Sequence record: OQ427096.1
Strand: one strand, 5' to 3'
DNA length: 64,000 bases
Shown here: piece by piece, positions 692 through 60,594 of the stretch
How the letters are laid out: each line of letters begins with the position of its first letter
Position numbering within the stretch: position 1 is the first letter of the stretch
Position numbers and translations under genes: made by a program
Notes under the pieces: model-generated
What the model saw: the letters and a program-made list of their open reading frames with translations, nothing else
The model's database searches: none
What the model was told of the DNA's origin: nothing

Positions 692-705
692 AACAAGACT
701 GTTCA

Positions 706-838
706 ATCAGTCGAACGAGTTGGAAGGTCGGGTTCGAATCCCGAAGTGATGACGTCCGGATTAGGTCATCATTTGGTGTAGTGGGCAGCACGCCGATACA
801 TTAAAAGGTTGCGCAGAAGTGTGCTTCATTTAGACTGT
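706..838 (+). ncRNA. YrlA-like Y RNA (circularly permuted tRNA-like domain)
   Basis: GTCGAACG motif (710-717), T-arm TCGGG-TTCGAAT-CCCGA (728-744), loop-closed acceptor-like stem (745-753/765-773), D-arm GTGT-AGTGGGCA-GCAC (776-791), CAGTC/GACTG terminal helix. Confidence 0.7.
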
Positions 839-840
839 GA

Positions 841-1005
841 ACACAGTCAGGCAAGTCGATCAAAAGACGCGCCGACAAGCCCGAAGCGAGTTCTTCGGCT
901 AAGAAGGAAAGACATCGTTTCCTACTTGTAACGACAAGTCCTTAGAGGATGAAGTCTCCGTTAGTCGGACGCCTGAGAGTGGCGAAAAGGATTCTTCGGT
1001 ATTTC
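841..1005 (+). ncRNA. Unidentified multi-hairpin RNA
   Basis: Non-coding; hairpins AGGAAA/TTTCCT, ACTTGT/ACAAGT, GTC.CCG/CGGAC, GCC/GGC. Confidence 0.4.
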
Positions 1006-1079
1006 GGGTTGCAAGCATTAAGGTGATGCAGGAGGCTTTTAACCTTCAGAACAGGGATCGTTACCCTGGCGACCCACCA
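1006..1079 (+). tRNA. tRNA-Lys(TTT)
   Basis: Loop CT-TTT-AA, variant T-loop ATCGTTA, CCA. Confidence 0.88.
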
Positions 1080-1925: not shown

Positions 1926-2760
1926 AGCAACTCAATTGTCGAAAGGCGATTGTTTAGGAATACGGTACAGTGATGTGCCTAATGGATTAAACGCCCACAA
2001 GCGGTCCGCCAGAGATGGTTCCTCTAGAACAAGTCGACATAGTGCAGCCGAAAGGTTGGCGTCTAGTATCCCTAGGCGATATGTGGAGGCTCAGTGAGAC
2101 ACGAGATTCAGGTCCAATGCCGAATGGTGAGGATTTGATCGTTTAGCGACGGTAGTGTTTCGGCTTAGCGGCAACTGACTCCAAGGACATTGAATCGGCA
2201 GGTACGTAGTTCAAGCCTTAGCGGGTAAGGGCGAGTATCAGGTCAGACGGACTAATGTTCGTACTGTATCACTCGGACGTAGGCTTAGCGGCTGAAACGA
2301 GAGGAGGTCGGGTAAGAAGCTGTCGCCCAAAAGGCTATGGACTTACGAACCTGCTCGACCTTAGTGGGCTTTCAACTTTGACGGTTAATCAAAACTACGA
2401 AAAACGCAAAGTCAGGTTCGGTCGTAAGTGAAAGTGGCTTAATCGTTGACACGAAAGTGAATCAACGCAATTTGAGGCTCGCAAGGCTGATGATTGTCTA
2501 TCAGGAAGTGCACCTAAGAGGAAGCCCCTCTGAATGGCTCGCAAGGTCAAGGGAAACGGGAAGGTAGAGTAGCTTACGATGACAGAGGAAACGCCACCTC
2601 TTTAAACTAGGCAGCCATGACGGTTAACAATGATGCATCGAAAGATGGTTGTTGTGGAAAAGTTGGGAAGGGCTCCGCAAGAGCTGATAATCCAAACGAA
2701 TGAATCGTCTCGTCAGACTGTATTCTCAGGTCGACACTTTGTTTCAAGGAGTTGTATTCC
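1920..2760 (+). ncRNA. Giant ornate RNA, GOLLD-like
   Basis: ~840 nt with no credible ORF inside a phage tRNA array; many GNRA-capped hairpins; end pairing CAACTC(1928-1933)/GAGTTG(2749-2754); motifs GAAACGAGAGGAG..CGGGTA, AACTACGAAAAA, CGCAAG, TGTATTCTCAG that I recall from GOLLD-type RNAs. Confidence 0.7.
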
Positions 2761-2886: not shown

Positions 2887-3090
2887 ACGCGTGTAGCTCA
2901 GTGGCGACGATAAGTTCAAAGACGGTAGGCATACTGTCACGCAGAGCGAGTCGAGGATTGGCGATACGACTGTGACGATACGAAGGTGGAGCTCGAGATC
3001 CTAGCTCCGACAATAACGGTACGGTCAACATTCGAGAGCGCCGGGTAGATAACCCGGAGGTCAGTGGTTCGATTCCATTTTCGCGTACCA
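2887..3090 (+). tRNA. tRNA-Ile(GAT)-like gene with ~130-nt structured insertion in the D-loop
   Basis: D-stem GCTC(2896-2899)/GAGC(3036-3039) separated by insert 2905-3034; CCGGG-TAGATAA-CCCGG; T-arm; ACCA. Confidence 0.75.
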
Positions 3091-3118
3091 TATAAGTAGA
3101 GTAGTACAAAAGTTTTAT

Positions 3119-4791: not shown

Positions 4792-4865
4792 TGTTCAGTA
4801 GCTCAGTTGGTAGAGCGGCTGCCATTTAGGGCGGCAGGTCGTGGGTTCGAGACCCACTTGGACGT
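4792..4865 (+). pseudogene. tRNA-like gene with aberrant anticodon loop and no encoded CCA
   Basis: Canonical D-arm TAGCTCAGTTGGTAGAGC and T-arm; GCTGCC-ATTTAG-GGCGGC gives a 6-nt (or 8-nt) loop. Confidence 0.65.
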
Positions 4866-23897: not shown

Positions 23898-24344
23898 ATG
23901 AACCGTGAACGTCTGATCTACATCGCTGAGTGGCTGGAAGCTGGCGCTCCGCATAAGGGCAAAGTGAAGGGCTTCGACATTTCCGTCGGTGTGCAGGCGC
24001 TCAAGAGCGATGCACCTTCCTGTGGTACCACCTGCTGCATTGCCGGTGCGGCTACGCAGTTCTTCAACGACGAAGATGGCGAGCTGGCCAACGCCGCTTT
24101 TGGCTTCAGCGAGTGGCAGGAAGATGATGCCACCAATGAAGCCGAGTGGGATGCGGTCTTCTATGAAGCGCAGGACCTGCTGGAGCTGGATCATAAGACC
24201 GCAGTCGACCTTTTCATTCCGGTCGGTGCAACCGGTATCTACGCTGAAGGCACCAACTGGTCGGATTTCAACGACCCCTACAAGACCGCACGCGTCATCC
24301 GCAATCTGCTGGAGACCGGCAAGGTCGACTGGAGCATCGAATAA
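23898..24344 (+). CDS. hypothetical protein
   Basis: CGTTCCIAGAA motif. Confidence 0.75.
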   Translation: MNRERLIYIAEWLEAGAPHKGKVKGFDISVGVQALKSDAPSCGTTCCIAGAATQFFNDEDGELANAAFGFSEWQEDDATNEAEWDAVFYEAQDLLELDHKTAVDLFIPVGATGIYAEGTNWSDFNDPYKTARVIRNLLETGKVDWSIE

Positions 24345-25231
24345 TGAAGGCAACTCTGACCATCGGTGTGTCTGCCTCGGGTAAGACCACCTGGGCGCTG
24401 TCTCAGCCGGGCGAAGTGCTGAGCCGCGACAACTACCGTTGGTCCATCATGGAAGAGAAGGGCATCTCGCCTTCCTGGACCAACTGGAAGTGGAAGTGGG
24501 AAAATCTGGTCACTGAACGCGTCGATGCCGACCTGGCACTGTGCGCGGCTCAGGGTAAGGATATCATCATCGCCGATACGAACTTGAACGAGAACGTTCG
24601 TGGCGCGATGGCTGCCAAGCTGGAAGCTCTGGGTTACACCGTCGAATACAAGTTCTTCGATGTGACTTGGGATGAAGCTGTTCGTCGCGACAACGAGCGT
24701 GCGCATGGTGTCGGCTATTCTGTGCTGCAGAAGCAGCATCAGCAGTTCCTGGACAACCATGTTGGTCGTCTCGCCGCAGACGCTGACAAGGGGACTCGTA
24801 AGGCTGCCATCGTCGACATTGATGGAACCGTGGCTCTGATGGAAGGCGTTCGTGGACCGTTCGAGTGGCACAAGGTGCACCTGGACAAGCCGCATACTCC
24901 GATCATCGATATGGTCAAGGGTCTGATGGCAGCTGGGTACTTCATCCTGTTCACCTCTGGTCGCAGTGATGAGTGCTTCGACCTGACCGAGAACTGGCTG
25001 CAGAGCGTCTTCGCCCCCGATGGCTACTGGCACGGCGACTGTCGTTTGCTGATGCGCGAAGCTTCGGATCAGCGTAAGGACACGATCGTGAAGGAAGAGA
25101 TCTACATGCGCCATATCCACTACAACTACGACGTGCAGATCGTTCTGGATGACCGTCCGAGCGTGTGCCGTATGTGGCGTGACCTGGGTCTGAACGTCGT
25201 GCAGGTCGGCAATCCCTACATCGAGTTCTAA
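24344..25231 (+). CDS. pseT: polynucleotide 5'-kinase/3'-phosphatase
   Basis: P-loop GVSASGKTT, SRD; HAD DIDGT and DDR motifs. Confidence 0.95.
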   Translation: MKATLTIGVSASGKTTWALSQPGEVLSRDNYRWSIMEEKGISPSWTNWKWKWENLVTERVDADLALCAAQGKDIIIADTNLNENVRGAMAAKLEALGYTVEYKFFDVTWDEAVRRDNERAHGVGYSVLQKQHQQFLDNHVGRLAADADKGTRKAAIVDIDGTVALMEGVRGPFEWHKVHLDKPHTPIIDMVKGLMAAGYFILFTSGRSDECFDLTENWLQSVFAPDGYWHGDCRLLMREASDQRKDTIVKEEIYMRHIHYNYDVQIVLDDRPSVCRMWRDLGLNVVQVGNPYIEF

Positions 25232-54224: not shown

Positions 54225-55340
54225 ATGTATCTGCAGTTGTCAGACTTTGACCACCTCCGCGAAAACCCGAACGTGCGTTTCCGCGAAGAGAACGTCGCCG
54301 GTAAAGATGTCGTCATCATCTCTTACATGCTTTCCAGCGACGAGCTGTGGAAGCTGCCGCTCGGTGTGGAATGCCGTGGCATCACCTTCGATGCCCAAAC
54401 GGGTAAGCTGATCTCGCTGCCGTTCGAGAAGTTCTTCAATGTCAACGAGAAGGCGCACACCCAGGCTCACATCATCCGTGACTACAAGGTGCAGGCTGTC
54501 CTGGACAAGCGCGACGGTTCGATGATCACGCCGATCTGGGCTGATGGTCGTATCTATCTCAAGACCAAGAAGACCTTCACCTCCGACGTCGCAGTGGCAG
54601 CTCAGCGCCCCCTTTCTGTCGAGCTGGAACGCTTCTGTGAAGCCATGCTCGAACTGAACTTCACTCCGATCTTCGAGTTCACCGATCCTGACTGCAAGAT
54701 CGTCCTCGACTACGGTCATGACTCTCAGCTTGTGCTGCTGGCGATGCGCGATATGATCGACGGCTCCTATGTCTCGTACAAGGACCTGGACCAGATTTCC
54801 AAGGCTTGGGGTGTGCAACTGGTTGGCGGCTATAACCATGACTATACCGTTGATGGCTACCTCGAGCTCGCAAAGACTGCTGAGGGCATCGAAGGCTGGG
54901 TCATCTACACCGATGAAGGTCGCTACAAGGTCAAGACAAAGTGGTACTGTGATCGCCATCACCTGATCGATATTCGTGAGCGCGATATCGCTGCCCTGGT
55001 ACTCGAAGAGAAGCTGGACGACCTGATCCCGAACCTGCTCGCAGGTGATGCGGATATGGAAGCCATCCGCGAGATCGAGCGCCGTGTGACCGATGGCATT
55101 TCGCACATCATGGAAACCGTTGCCTTCCTTGGTGTCCATGCAAGTGGTATCGACCTGGGTAAGGATCGTGCCGATTGGGTCAACGCCAACTGTGGCAAGC
55201 TGTCGAAGTTTGTCCATCGTGCAGCTCGTGGTGTGGAGAACTCTGACGAGTCCTTCAAGGAGTTCTATCGTCAGCACTATCTCAGCACCTTCTCACTCCG
55301 GTCAATCGGCAACCCCAATTTCCGCGACGAGGAAGAATAA
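54225..55340 (+). CDS. rnlA: RNA ligase 1 (T4 RnlA-like)
   Basis: ECRGITF, PFEKFFN, motif I KRDGSMI, FEF, EGWV, KVKTKWY. Confidence 0.93.
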   Translation: MYLQLSDFDHLRENPNVRFREENVAGKDVVIISYMLSSDELWKLPLGVECRGITFDAQTGKLISLPFEKFFNVNEKAHTQAHIIRDYKVQAVLDKRDGSMITPIWADGRIYLKTKKTFTSDVAVAAQRPLSVELERFCEAMLELNFTPIFEFTDPDCKIVLDYGHDSQLVLLAMRDMIDGSYVSYKDLDQISKAWGVQLVGGYNHDYTVDGYLELAKTAEGIEGWVIYTDEGRYKVKTKWYCDRHHLIDIRERDIAALVLEEKLDDLIPNLLAGDADMEAIREIERRVTDGISHIMETVAFLGVHASGIDLGKDRADWVNANCGKLSKFVHRAARGVENSDESFKEFYRQHYLSTFSLRSIGNPNFRDEEE

Positions 55341-59240: not shown

Positions 59241-59521
59241 TGGAAAACGATTTCGGCATTGACTATCACCTCAACATCATGAACAACGGGCGCCCAACGC
59301 CTTCGGACTATCTCCCTCCTCGCCCAGAGAAATGCCTCTGGAAGATCATCTCGTTCGATGGCTACTATGCCACCTACCGCACCGAATGCGGACAGCTGGA
59401 AGATATCCGTGCTGAGGAATGCGTTGGCATGCCGATGATCCCCGAGCCTCAAGGCAAGTACTGCCATCATTGCGGTGGCAGGCTGCATGTGAACTCGTCG
59501 TTCAAAAGGAAGACACACTGA
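59237..59521 (+). CDS. hypothetical protein, Cys-rich
   Basis: C.W...Y.TECG...YC.HCGG. Confidence 0.65.
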   Translation: MMENDFGIDYHLNIMNNGRPTPSDYLPPRPEKCLWKIISFDGYYATYRTECGQLEDIRAEECVGMPMIPEPQGKYCHHCGGRLHVNSSFKRKTH

Positions 59522-60594
59522 TGAAGTTCTACATCGTGGGTGGCGCAGTTCGCGATCATCTGATGGGCAAGGTCCCGAAAGACATTGACTACGTTGTGGT
59601 TGGTGCCACTCCTGAAGACATGCTGGACATGGGACTGAAACAGGTCGGCGCCGACTTCCCTGTCTTCATCGACGAGGCTGGCACGGAGTTCGCTCTGGCT
59701 CGTACCGAACGAAAGACAGGCGTTGGTTACAATGGTTTCACCACTGACCACAGCACATCGGTGACGTTGGAAGAGGATCTGTCTCGCCGTGACCTGACCA
59801 TCAACGCTATGGCAATGGTGAAAGACAGCCAGGCAATCATCGACCCGTTCAACGGCGTTGCGGACATCGAAGACAAGATCCTGCGCCATGTCTCTCTGGC
59901 CTTTGTGGAGGATCCTGTGCGTGTGCTTCGCATCGCTCGTTTCCGTGCAAGGCTGGGCGAGGACTGGACCATCGCACCTGATACCATGGTACTGCTGAAA
60001 GAGATGGTGCGCCGAGGCGACTTGGCTCATCTGACGCGTGAGCGTGTGCTGTTGGAAATGGAAAAGGCATTCGGTGAGCCGTACCCCGATATCTTCTTCT
60101 CGACTTTGAAAGAGATCGGAGCCCTAGACGTGGTCTTCCCTCACTTGTTCATGATCGACAAGCTGGACTATCAAGAGATAAGAAAGGCTGCCGGCACATC
60201 GCCGGCGTTTGTCTACTCCGTTGTCTCTCTGATCATGCCTGAGACGAGTGCTGATTACTTCGGCGAACGGCTGCGCGTCTCCAACGAGTGGCGACAGATG
60301 GCTGTCATGTATCGCGCCATGATGAATAGCCGAATGGATTCCAATCAGGTAGACATCCTGTACAAGATGGATGCCTACAGGAAACATCATGTGTGGGATG
60401 CTCTGCTGAGAGAACTGGTCAAGACTGGAAGGAGTCGTGAGAGGTTCTACAACGATCTGTTCGTTGTCTGGTGTTCAACCAGTCGAATGAGCTTCACCGA
60501 ATTGACCGAATGGCAGCGTGATAACCTCAAGGGTCCGGAGATTGCTGAGGCCATCAAACAGCTGCGCAAGAAGGTGATCAATGAAACTCGGTGA
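59521..60594 (+). CDS. cca: tRNA nucleotidyltransferase (CCA-adding, class II)
   Basis: VGGAVRD.L....KDID, VGADFPVF, EFALARTERK, EDLSRRDLTINAMA, EDPVRVLR.ARF. Confidence 0.95.
   Translation: MKFYIVGGAVRDHLMGKVPKDIDYVVVGATPEDMLDMGLKQVGADFPVFIDEAGTEFALARTERKTGVGYNGFTTDHSTSVTLEEDLSRRDLTINAMAMVKDSQAIIDPFNGVADIEDKILRHVSLAFVEDPVRVLRIARFRARLGEDWTIAPDTMVLLKEMVRRGDLAHLTRERVLLEMEKAFGEPYPDIFFSTLKEIGALDVVFPHLFMIDKLDYQEIRKAAGTSPAFVYSVVSLIMPETSADYFGERLRVSNEWRQMAVMYRAMMNSRMDSNQVDILYKMDAYRKHHVWDALLRELVKTGRSRERFYNDLFVVWCSTSRMSFTELTEWQRDNLKGPEIAEAIKQLRKKVINETR

Follow-up and report, generated by a model that had tools for sequence, protein, structure and literature searches.

A permuted, anticodon-less tRNA-like element with YrlA-like architecture in the tRNA array of Xanthomonas phage X1

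In the permuted tRNA genes of Cyanidioschyzon merolae the 3′ half lies upstream of the 5′ half, and a short linker joins the acceptor strands. These genes keep the anticodon loop, and their transcripts mature into normal tRNAs via a circular intermediate. Ro60 is found in a minority of bacteria. To our knowledge, all YrlA and other Y RNAs described so far are tied to a Ro60 gene, and no partner that binds their tRNA-like module is known to us. The topology that has been published for YrlA is the same as that of the phage element described in this study (PMC4201824; bioRxiv 10.1101/312249). Phage-encoded copies of YrlA are known in mycobacteriophages, and the YrlA of Mycobacterium smegmatis has been shown to be cut by RNase P RNA and to receive CCA (PMC4201824). 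It has been cautioned by Chen et al. that tRNA-tRNA junctions mimic YrlA (PMC4201824).

In this study, a stretch of 64,000 nucleotides (the window) was analyzed, which is the last 64 kb of the genome of Xanthomonas phage X1 (OQ427096.1, 200,058 bp); window coordinates equal record coordinates minus 136,058. X1, a lytic T4-like myovirus, infects X. campestris pv. campestris 8004; its published description lists 34 tRNAs and no other RNA, leaving the permuted element unmentioned (PMC13384950). A large tRNA array was observed, with 36 tRNAs called in the window by ARAGORN, and a GOLLD RNA (2303-2732, 179 bits) was identified inside it with Rfam. Neighboring tRNAs of the same type are abundant in the array (Ala, Glu, Tyr, Asn, Asp, Lys, Ile, and Gln). 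An encoded CCA is present in 35 of the 36 called tRNAs, the sole exception being an odd call at 4792-4865. The RNA-repair genes of X1 encode a polynucleotide kinase (Pnk), two RNA ligases, and a CCA-adding enzyme. One ligase is annotated as such; the second is annotated as hypothetical and has a match to the Pfam RNA_ligase family. Aberrant-bodied tRNA-derived RNAs, with acceptor stem, T arm, and CCA, were observed in gaps of the array at ~250-345 and ~2887-3101. Both are conserved in phage BUDD, the closest relative of X1, whose array is collinear with that of X1 and 96-100% identical. A tRNA-Lys-like gene with an odd T loop shows compensatory changes between the two phages. Taken with rnaC and rnaD of T4, the gap RNAs and the tRNA-Lys-like gene indicate that tRNA-derived RNAs other than tRNAs are a recurring and apparently maintained feature of such arrays.

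The tRNA-like element adjoins the 3′ end of tRNA-Leu(GAG) (607-691) and lies on the same strand as all tRNAs of the array (+, as for every part given below). A first, sequence-only reading of this DNA had proposed tRNA elements in permuted order, and inspection of the sequence found every listed part in its place. From 719 to 797 the order of parts is anticodon-stem 3′ strand, T arm, closed acceptor-like hairpin, D arm, and anticodon-stem 5′ strand. The equivalent of the anticodon-stem 3′ strand (GTTGG, 719-723) pairs with 793-797 and is followed by a 4-nt variable loop (AAGG, 724-727) with a purine at the Y48 position. The T arm (TCGGG/TTCGAAT/CCCGA, 728-744) has a 5-bp stem and a canonical loop. 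It is continued by an acceptor-like stem of 9 bp (745-753/765-773; the whole hairpin spans 745-773), closed by the 11-nt loop GTCCGGATTAG, with no CCA and no G3.U70. A U8-G9 linker (TG, 774-775) leads to the D arm (GTGT/AGTGGGCA/GCAC, 776-791), which has a 4-bp stem and carries A14, G18G19, and A21. G26 and the equivalent of the anticodon-stem 5′ strand (CCGAT) follow at 792-797, where the core of an X1-specific cassette ends. The bases of the tRNA core are present: U8 (774), A14, G18G19, A21, G26, G53-C61, and T54-Psi55-C56-A58. The sole departure is G727, which lies opposite G15 and is a purine where the Levitt partner Y48 normally sits.

When 767-797, a dummy anticodon loop, and 719-752 were joined in normal tRNA order, the product was called as a 75-nt tRNA by ARAGORN with any dummy loop used, against 0 of 1000 dinucleotide shuffles of the re-joined halves. 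In the native order no tRNA was called by ARAGORN or by the Rfam tRNA model (RF00005), including a search of 650-1010 at E<=10. The element departs from a canonical tRNA in lacking the anticodon loop and in having a closed acceptor stem. Neither the 26 nt upstream nor the downstream sequence can supply the missing halves, so the element does not represent two overlooked tRNAs. Both truncations exactly flank the anticodon loop, and the halves of the anticodon stem are still complementary. No array tRNA resembling the element was found, which rules out a recent duplicate. It is among the few tRNA-like RNAs of the array that have no encoded CCA and, since there is also no similar array tRNA, it is not the fresh scar of two neighboring array tRNAs. 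The segment 719-797 is a genuine 3′-half-then-5′-half arrangement, an anticodon-less tRNA mimic.

The terminal helix of the sequence-only reading was also detected, but it is longer than had been described, with 14 interrupted pairs between 697-712 (5′ arm, GACTGTTCAATCAGTC) and 833-848 (3′ arm, GACTGTGAACACAGTC). The two segments are near-inverted copies of each other, their pairing is interrupted by two 2-nt bulges, and in a fold of 692-852 the probability of the pair 710-835 was 0.93. The 5′ arm has an alternative local hairpin, and the 3′ arm can fold on itself. In folds constrained to keep the cloverleaf, the long stem is isoenergetic with the two local hairpins (-45.2 vs -45.3 kcal/mol), and in a 315-nt context the local hairpins are preferred over the long stem. 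A small hairpin (GCGCA-GAAG-TGTGC, 811-824), followed by a T-rich tract, lies on the 3′ side of a three-way junction and is common to X1 and BUDD. Further long-range complementarity was observed between 842-852 and 971-981.

A match to the YrlA/Ro60 motif GNCGAAN(0-1)G, GTCGAACG, is located at 710-717, at the inner end of the terminal stem. As had been proposed from the sequence, it lies in the 5′ strand, beside the stem formed by the two ends. The motif is the sole YrlA-specific feature that the element has. GNCGAANG is frequent in this DNA (56 matches in the window, both strands), so that its occurrence in the 26-nt leader has a chance probability of ~2%. The Rfam YrlA consensus carries GGCGAAUG, which is of the proteobacterial GNCGAANG type, whereas eight aligned actinobacterial-type YrlAs carry GUCGGUUAC instead. 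The motif-containing 10-mer CAGTCGAACG agrees at 8 of 10 positions with CAATCGAAAG of the X1 tmRNA, in the identical register 20 nt upstream of the T stem; among 259 control comparisons, the next highest agreement was 6/10. Because of this agreement, the motif counts for less as evidence of Ro60 binding, and a distant relationship with tmRNA is conceivable.

Comparison with BUDD revealed an indel at 693-804, directly after the CCA of tRNA-Leu(GAG), where X1 has a cassette of ~110 nt and BUDD ~9 nt. BUDD has no 5′ arm, no motif, and no part of the tRNA-like module, but it keeps the 811-824 hairpin and the complete 3′ arm at 833-848. BUDD has kept the region 805-1005, where ~200 nt contain 4 mismatches, and the X1-BUDD conservation of 838-1005 is unexceptional for the array. 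Since the flanks are near-identical and 693-804 is missing, either X1 has recently gained the stretch or BUDD has recently lost it. The spacer after the CCA (AACAA vs AGTTT) does not polarize the indel, because both variants are common in the array. Several further cassette-sized indels separate the two arrays.

Searches of wider databases for homologues gave negative results. When 600-1100 and 693-850 were compared by blastn with 50,697 phage records (INPHARED), the sole matches were X1 itself and, in BUDD, the 3′ part common to both phages. A scan of IMG/VR for GTCGAA..T-loop..AGTGG gave 68 loci, which were class II tRNAs, tandem tRNAs, or noise, with no homologue; a second IMG/VR scan (T-loop..GTGTAGTGGNNAGCAC) gave 6 loci and a tightened pattern in JGI metagenomes 14 loci, all of them likewise class II tRNAs, tandem tRNAs, or noise. 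Relatives were also sought in IMG/VR via neighboring proteins: none was found for one protein, and two distant contigs were found for another. A model hit in these two contigs was rejected, being the junction of two insert-bearing tRNA-like RNAs. The element is a singleton and therefore offers no covariation or conservation evidence. A match to an HDV-like ribozyme at 855-911 (12.6 bits vs a gathering threshold of 44) was dropped, since the 14 nt between its P1 strands are too few for P2 and P3.

Our preferred reading, to which we assign a probability of roughly 40%, is that 697-848 (+) encodes a functional tRNA-derived scaffold or decoy RNA with YrlA architecture, which is processed and modified like a tRNA. 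Such an RNA would be co-transcribed with the array tRNAs and released by the tRNA-processing machinery. It could adopt an L-shaped fold, the elbow of which might be recognized by RNase P, TruB/Dus, and the phage CCA-adding enzyme. It has no anticodon loop and no free CCA end, so that its role would be to bind proteins, as a scaffold or decoy, and not to decode. Several observations were counted in favor of this reading: the permuted order, the canonical core, and the tRNA call after re-joining (against 0/1000 shuffles); the truncations exactly at the anticodon loop, the lack of CCA, and the 14-bp stem with the motif at its inner end; the full-length alignment with a covariance model of true YrlAs (R1, see below), together with the published topology, RNase P cleavage, and CCA addition of YrlA; and the investment of the phage in tRNAs and RNA repair, the conserved tRNA-derived RNAs in BUDD, and the stable RNAs of T4. 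Against a functional mimic we counted that the element is a singleton absent from BUDD, that it has a purine at Y48, and that Ro60 is missing from the phage. Two local hairpins compete with the terminal stem, the 3′ arm of which stands partnerless in BUDD; there is no match to the Rfam YrlA model, and tRNA junctions score higher in R1.

The absence of the element from BUDD and from the databases searched makes one rival serious, namely that the element is a non-functional rearrangement by-product of a fast-changing tRNA array. It would join the 3′ half of one member of a former tandem tRNA pair to the 5′ half of the following member, or it would be a cassette acquired by recombination, in either case still undecayed. 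We consider this origin possible, though on balance doubtful. That the element is a singleton and is missing from BUDD between 96-100% identical flanks speaks for it, and the several cassette-like indels between the arrays agree with it, as do the many same-type tRNA pairs, junctions of which mimic YrlA in a covariance model. However, each truncation coincides exactly with an edge of the anticodon loop and the halves of the stem remain complementary, every base of the tertiary core is intact, the acceptor-like stem is lengthened to 9 bp, and a flanking inverted repeat produces the 14-bp closing stem. No CCA was found between the halves, in contrast to 35/36 called tRNAs of the window, and no similar tRNA was found in X1, BUDD, or any phage record.

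The sequence-only reading had assigned the element to the YrlA type. This assignment survives in part: the topology, the motif, and the long stem agree with it, but the Rfam score, the signature bases, the absence of the element from BUDD, and the lack of linkage to Ro60 do not. Nor does the 3′ strand of the helix proposed to bind Ro, as it belongs to a hairpin that is conserved in BUDD without the tRNA-like part. A search with the Rfam YrlA model had been named by that reading as its own check, the lack of a match speaking against it, and the Rfam 15 model RF02553 had no match in 650-1010 at E<=10. More generally, neither at the gathering threshold nor at E<=10 did Rfam return a YrlA, Y_RNA, tmRNA, or tRNA match on the element. 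The published YrlA of mycobacteriophage Bxz1 was detected by RF02553 (32.5 bits, 190 nt upstream of its Ro60 gene). YrlAs were also found in 6/6 fetched bacterial loci, upstream of Ro60 on the same strand (34-48 bits), so that the positive control comprised 7/7 actinobacterial-type loci at 32-48 bits. In a covariance model built from an alignment of 8 true YrlAs (R1), the X1 element scored 19.9 bits (E 2e-5 locally), with T arm, closed stem, and D arm aligned over the full length. Ordinary tRNA-tRNA junctions from the same array, BUDD, and T4 scored 22-33 bits in R1 and thus outscore the element, so its score shows likeness to tRNA and not YrlA membership.

Invariant features of the eight true YrlAs are GUCGGUUAC including YUAY, GGU before the T stem, U8-A9, and the D stem GCUC/GAGC; general tRNA features aside, the X1 element is without them. 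No TA occurs between 717 and 728 and the linker is TG (774-775), in contrast to TTAC and TA in 8/8 YrlAs. The D stem is GTGT/GCAC and the T stem TCGGG/CCCGA, compared with GCUC/GAGC and GCGGG/CCCGC in YrlA. [quoted passage not shown] As three defining features (model score, signature nucleotides, and linkage to Ro60) are missing, filing the element under YrlA is unwarranted; judged by its sequence, it is not demonstrably a YrlA homologue.

The earlier observation that the window has no Ro60 gene was borne out, and a look-up for TROVE/Ro60 in the rest of the phage, which had been called for, found none in the whole 200-kb X1 genome. When Ro60 from Bxz1 and Ro60 from Agrobacterium phage Atu_ph07 were used as tblastn queries against phage records, matches were obtained in 356 and 382 records, respectively. 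The hosts of Ro60 phages include Mycobacterium, Streptomyces, Gordonia, Microbacterium, Rhodococcus, Agrobacterium, Sinorhizobium, and Vibrio; X1 and BUDD were not among the organisms listed for the matches. A local tblastn of Ro60 against the complete X1 genome gave a best E of 1.4, and no TROVE domain was detected by Pfam in ten large unassigned X1 ORFs or is present in the annotation. As tblastn, Pfam, and annotation are all negative, we conclude that X1 has no Ro60. Nothing linking Ro60 or TROVE to Xanthomonas was found in the literature searched. Tethering of Ro60 would be possible only via a host Ro60. In two Ro60-encoding rhizobiophages no YrlA was detected within 4.5 kb of Ro60 with RF02553 or R1. 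Adjacency of the two genes is therefore not universal in phages of Proteobacteria, and these loci provide no proteobacterial phage comparator.

In light of these results we regard it as unlikely that the element is a true, divergent YrlA that binds host Ro60 (Rsr) via GUCGAACG and the terminal stem, while its module tethers or sequesters an effector (e.g., PNPase) or feeds the phage RNA-repair enzymes. The architecture and modular layout do match those of YrlA (PMC4201824), the motif is of the proteobacterial GNCGAANG type, and the 5′ and 3′ ends form a long stem. Ro60 and YrlA have a functional connection to RNA repair (rsr-yrlBA-rtcBA), X1 encodes Pnk, two ligases, and a CCA-adding enzyme, and the two rhizobiophages show that Ro60-YrlA adjacency is not absolute. 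However, a divergent YrlA has to be squared with the silence of RF02553 at E<=10 (vs 32-48 bits in 7/7 actinobacterial-type YrlAs), with the missing YUAY, U8-A9, and conserved D stem, and with absence from BUDD. The phage has no TROVE/Ro60, the minority distribution of Ro60 in bacteria and the lack of a Xanthomonas link in the literature searched also count against this reading, and the motif, with its ~2% chance probability, is also explained by the 8/10 similarity to tmRNA.

A bolder proposal, which we hold to be distinctly unlikely, is an orphan Y RNA of YrlA architecture with no Ro60 gene of the phage coupled to it. During infection it would capture the Ro60/PNPase machinery of the host or, after RNase P cleavage and CCA addition, would work with the phage set of Pnk, ligase, and CCA-adding enzyme. 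If true, it would be the first Y-RNA-like effector deployed by a virus without the protein partner, and the first inside the tRNA array of a phage of a Gram-negative host.

Permuted tmRNAs required separate consideration. In Stenotrophomonas phage Yut3, of the sister genus Menderavirus, the corresponding slot between tRNA-Leu and tRNA-Thr is occupied by a genuine permuted two-piece tmRNA (119 bits with tmRNA_permuted; G3.U70, ACCA end, and tag AANDDSYTVRIAA). A permuted tmRNA that had escaped annotation lies 15 kb upstream in X1 itself (record 121,009-121,337; 76.6 bits; tag AANDADYSVARYA). On 650-1010 no tmRNA model had a match at E<=10, and ARAGORN called no tmRNA in the window. The element has no G3.U70, ACCA, or tag ORF; its lone acceptor wobble, G746.T772, has the G on the wrong strand, and ACG follows the 7th acceptor pair. 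The overall similarity to the Yut3 or the X1 tmRNA is not significant beyond the T arm. A decayed tmRNA was ruled out on these grounds: the X1 permuted tmRNA is intact elsewhere, so the element in this slot is not the remnant of a lost one.

[quoted passage not shown] As in the tmRNA precursor, RNase P would open the acceptor loop, and the phage enzyme would add CCA, and the product would be a two-piece, anticodon-less tRNA-like RNA. Its parts succeed one another as in a permuted tmRNA gene (P2 strand, T arm, acceptor 3′ strand, loop, acceptor 5′ strand, D region, P2 strand), a Menderavirus tmRNA occupies the same slot, and X1 has a permuted tmRNA of its own. The 10-mer agrees at 8/10 in identical register, compared with 6/10 for the next best of 259. 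The phage has a CCA-adding enzyme although 35/36 called tRNAs encode CCA, and M. smegmatis YrlA provides a precedent for RNase P cleavage and CCA addition (PMC4201824). Such a derivative, however, would have to lack any tmRNA model match in 650-1010 at E<=10 as well as G3.U70, ACCA, and a tag frame, and would have to possess a true 4-bp D arm, which tmRNAs lack; its similarity is not significant beyond the T arm, and the X1 tmRNA is intact elsewhere.

Equally improbable is a larger ncRNA of ~310 nt that would fill 693-1005, from tRNA-Leu to the tRNA-Lys-like gene, with the element as its 5′ domain and a BUDD version without the tRNA-like domain. In its favor, RNase P is not expected to cut anywhere from 692 to 1006, BUDD keeps 805-1005 (4 mismatches in ~200 nt), the 3′ arm of the stem and the 811-824 hairpin lie in the shared part, and 842-852 is complementary to 971-981. 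Against it, conservation of the shared part does not exceed that of the array in general, folding of 806-1006 gave a z-score of only -1.7, the Rfam matches are at noise level, and the downstream part exists in BUDD without the module.

Should the element be a functional scaffold or decoy, either phages can exploit host Ro60 by RNA alone or the scaffold has a use that is independent of Ro60, as a decoy for elbow-binding factors or as a substrate of repair and CCA-adding enzymes. A functional element would also bear on the old problem of non-tRNA stable RNAs in T4-type tRNA clusters. As a by-product, it would still give a snapshot of how a topology like that of YrlA or permuted tmRNA arises from tandem tRNA genes.

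Among the known systems, the likeness to YrlA (RF02553; PMC4201824; bioRxiv 10.1101/312249) extends to the permuted module without anticodon loop or free CCA and to the GNCGAAN(0-1)G motif in the 5′ strand beside a stem formed by both ends. The X1 element differs from YrlA in its closed stem of 9 bp with an 11-nt loop (vs ~6-7 bp and a short loop), in an extra hairpin on the 3′ side of the junction, in having no Ro60 gene within 4 kb or genome-wide, and in its location in the tRNA array of a T4-like phage of a gammaproteobacterium. Deinococcus radiodurans Yrn1 and metazoan Y RNAs have the same modular design, in which the Ro60 site is carried by a long end-to-end stem and the effector-binding module is apical; Yrn1 also has a T-arm-like loop. 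In Yrn1, however, the T and D elements are oriented differently and there is no full D arm (PMC4201824). Yrn1 and the metazoan Y RNAs are all genetically or physically tied to Ro60, whereas X1 is without Ro60. Permuted tmRNA (RF04321; beta_tmRNA RF01850) resembles the element in the order of parts in the DNA, the acceptor stem that is closed in the precursor, the syntenic slot of the Menderavirus gene, and the short same-register match upstream of the T arm. The element differs from it in having a true D arm and no G3.U70, ACCA, tag ORF, or pseudoknots. Unlike the permuted tRNA genes of C. merolae, it has no anticodon loop. Species 1 and 2 of T4 (rnaC and rnaD) are not permuted, have a free acceptor end, and share no sequence similarity with it. 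Like the element, however, they are short, are not tRNAs although partly built from tRNA elements, and are encoded within the tRNA cluster of a phage of the T4 type; the 3′ end of rnaC has a canonical T arm and acceptor-like pairing. Counterparts of the rnaC/rnaD type are present in the X1 array itself, at ~250-345 and ~2887-3101.

The tRNA 3' ends in the arrays of X1 and its closest relative, Xanthomonas phage BUDD, seem to be common sites of cassette-like indels. BUDD carries an 80-nt insert, specific to BUDD, between tRNA-Thr and tRNA-Gly (L002:3458-3537, in the BUDD sequence), and this insert starts with AACAA directly after the CCA, as does the X1 element. The X1 element is separated from the next tRNA-like gene by about 160 nt of non-coding sequence (window 849-1005, plus strand), which BUDD has in near-identical form. 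No Rfam family was found for this spacer, the only match being a noise-level HDV-like one at 855-911; a long-range pairing of 842-852 with 971-981 is possible.

The gene that follows (1006-1079, plus strand) was called as tRNA-Lys(UUU) by ARAGORN and was not called by the Rfam tRNA model. Its T loop, ATCGTTA, is non-canonical. Both its anticodon stem and its T stem show compensatory changes between X1 and BUDD, suggesting that the gene is functional. Another unusual gene, at 4792-4865 (plus strand), was reported by ARAGORN as "tRNA-???" with a 2-nt anticodon and is given as tRNA-OTHER in GenBank; among the ARAGORN-called tRNAs in the window, it is the only one with no encoded CCA.

X1 possesses a full tRNA-repair set, consisting of two RNA ligases, a polynucleotide kinase, and a CCA-adding enzyme. 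One ligase is annotated as such; the second (WEM34490.1, 39760-40926, plus strand) is annotated as hypothetical, and was recognized by its domain content (Pfam RNA_ligase and a PHA02142 OB fold). The other coordinates given for this set are 54225-55340, 24344-25231, and 59521-60594. Despite the presence of a CCA-adding enzyme, CCA is already encoded in 35 of the 36 ARAGORN-called X1 tRNAs.

A GOLLD RNA (Rfam RF02032, 179 bits against a gathering score of 150) was detected within the tRNA array at 2303-2732 (plus strand); it is absent from the annotation of the GenBank record. Also unannotated is a permuted two-piece tmRNA (tmRNA_permuted, 76.6 bits), located outside the window at 121,009-121,337 of OQ427096.1 (L005:21009-21337). 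Its acceptor stem is GGGCCTG/CAGGTCC, with G3.U70, and the tag given by ARAGORN is AANDADYSVARYA. In contrast, the permuted tmRNA of the related Menderavirus phage Yut3 (L163:2596-2847, 119 bits) is placed in the slot between tRNA-Leu and tRNA-Thr.

A homolog of Ro60/TROVE, labeled "Clp protease-like protein" in GenBank, was identified in Agrobacterium phage Atu_ph07 (L076:4980-6635, MF403008.1); it shares 39% identity with Bxz1 Ro60 over the full length. No YrlA-like RNA was detectable within 4.5 kb of the Ro60 gene in Atu_ph07 or Sinorhizobium phage Phosso.

An uncultivated phage, the distant relative UViG_3300033143_001408 (IMG/VR), encodes two adjacent tRNA-like RNAs (L180:12567-12733 and L180:12758-12939), detected by neither ARAGORN nor the Rfam tRNA model. 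In each of them the 7-bp acceptor stem is perfect, CCA and a D arm are present, and an insert of about 110 nt precedes the T arm; a tRNA(CUA) of the suppressor type is located 2 kb upstream. Gaps in the X1 array hold two more tRNA-like RNAs (about 250-345 and about 2887-3101, plus strand), both conserved in BUDD. CCA is encoded in both, and both possess a T arm and an acceptor stem of 7 bp, but their bodies are aberrant or greatly enlarged (the second RNA contains an insert of about 170 nt); they recall rnaC, a stable non-tRNA RNA of the T4 tRNA cluster.
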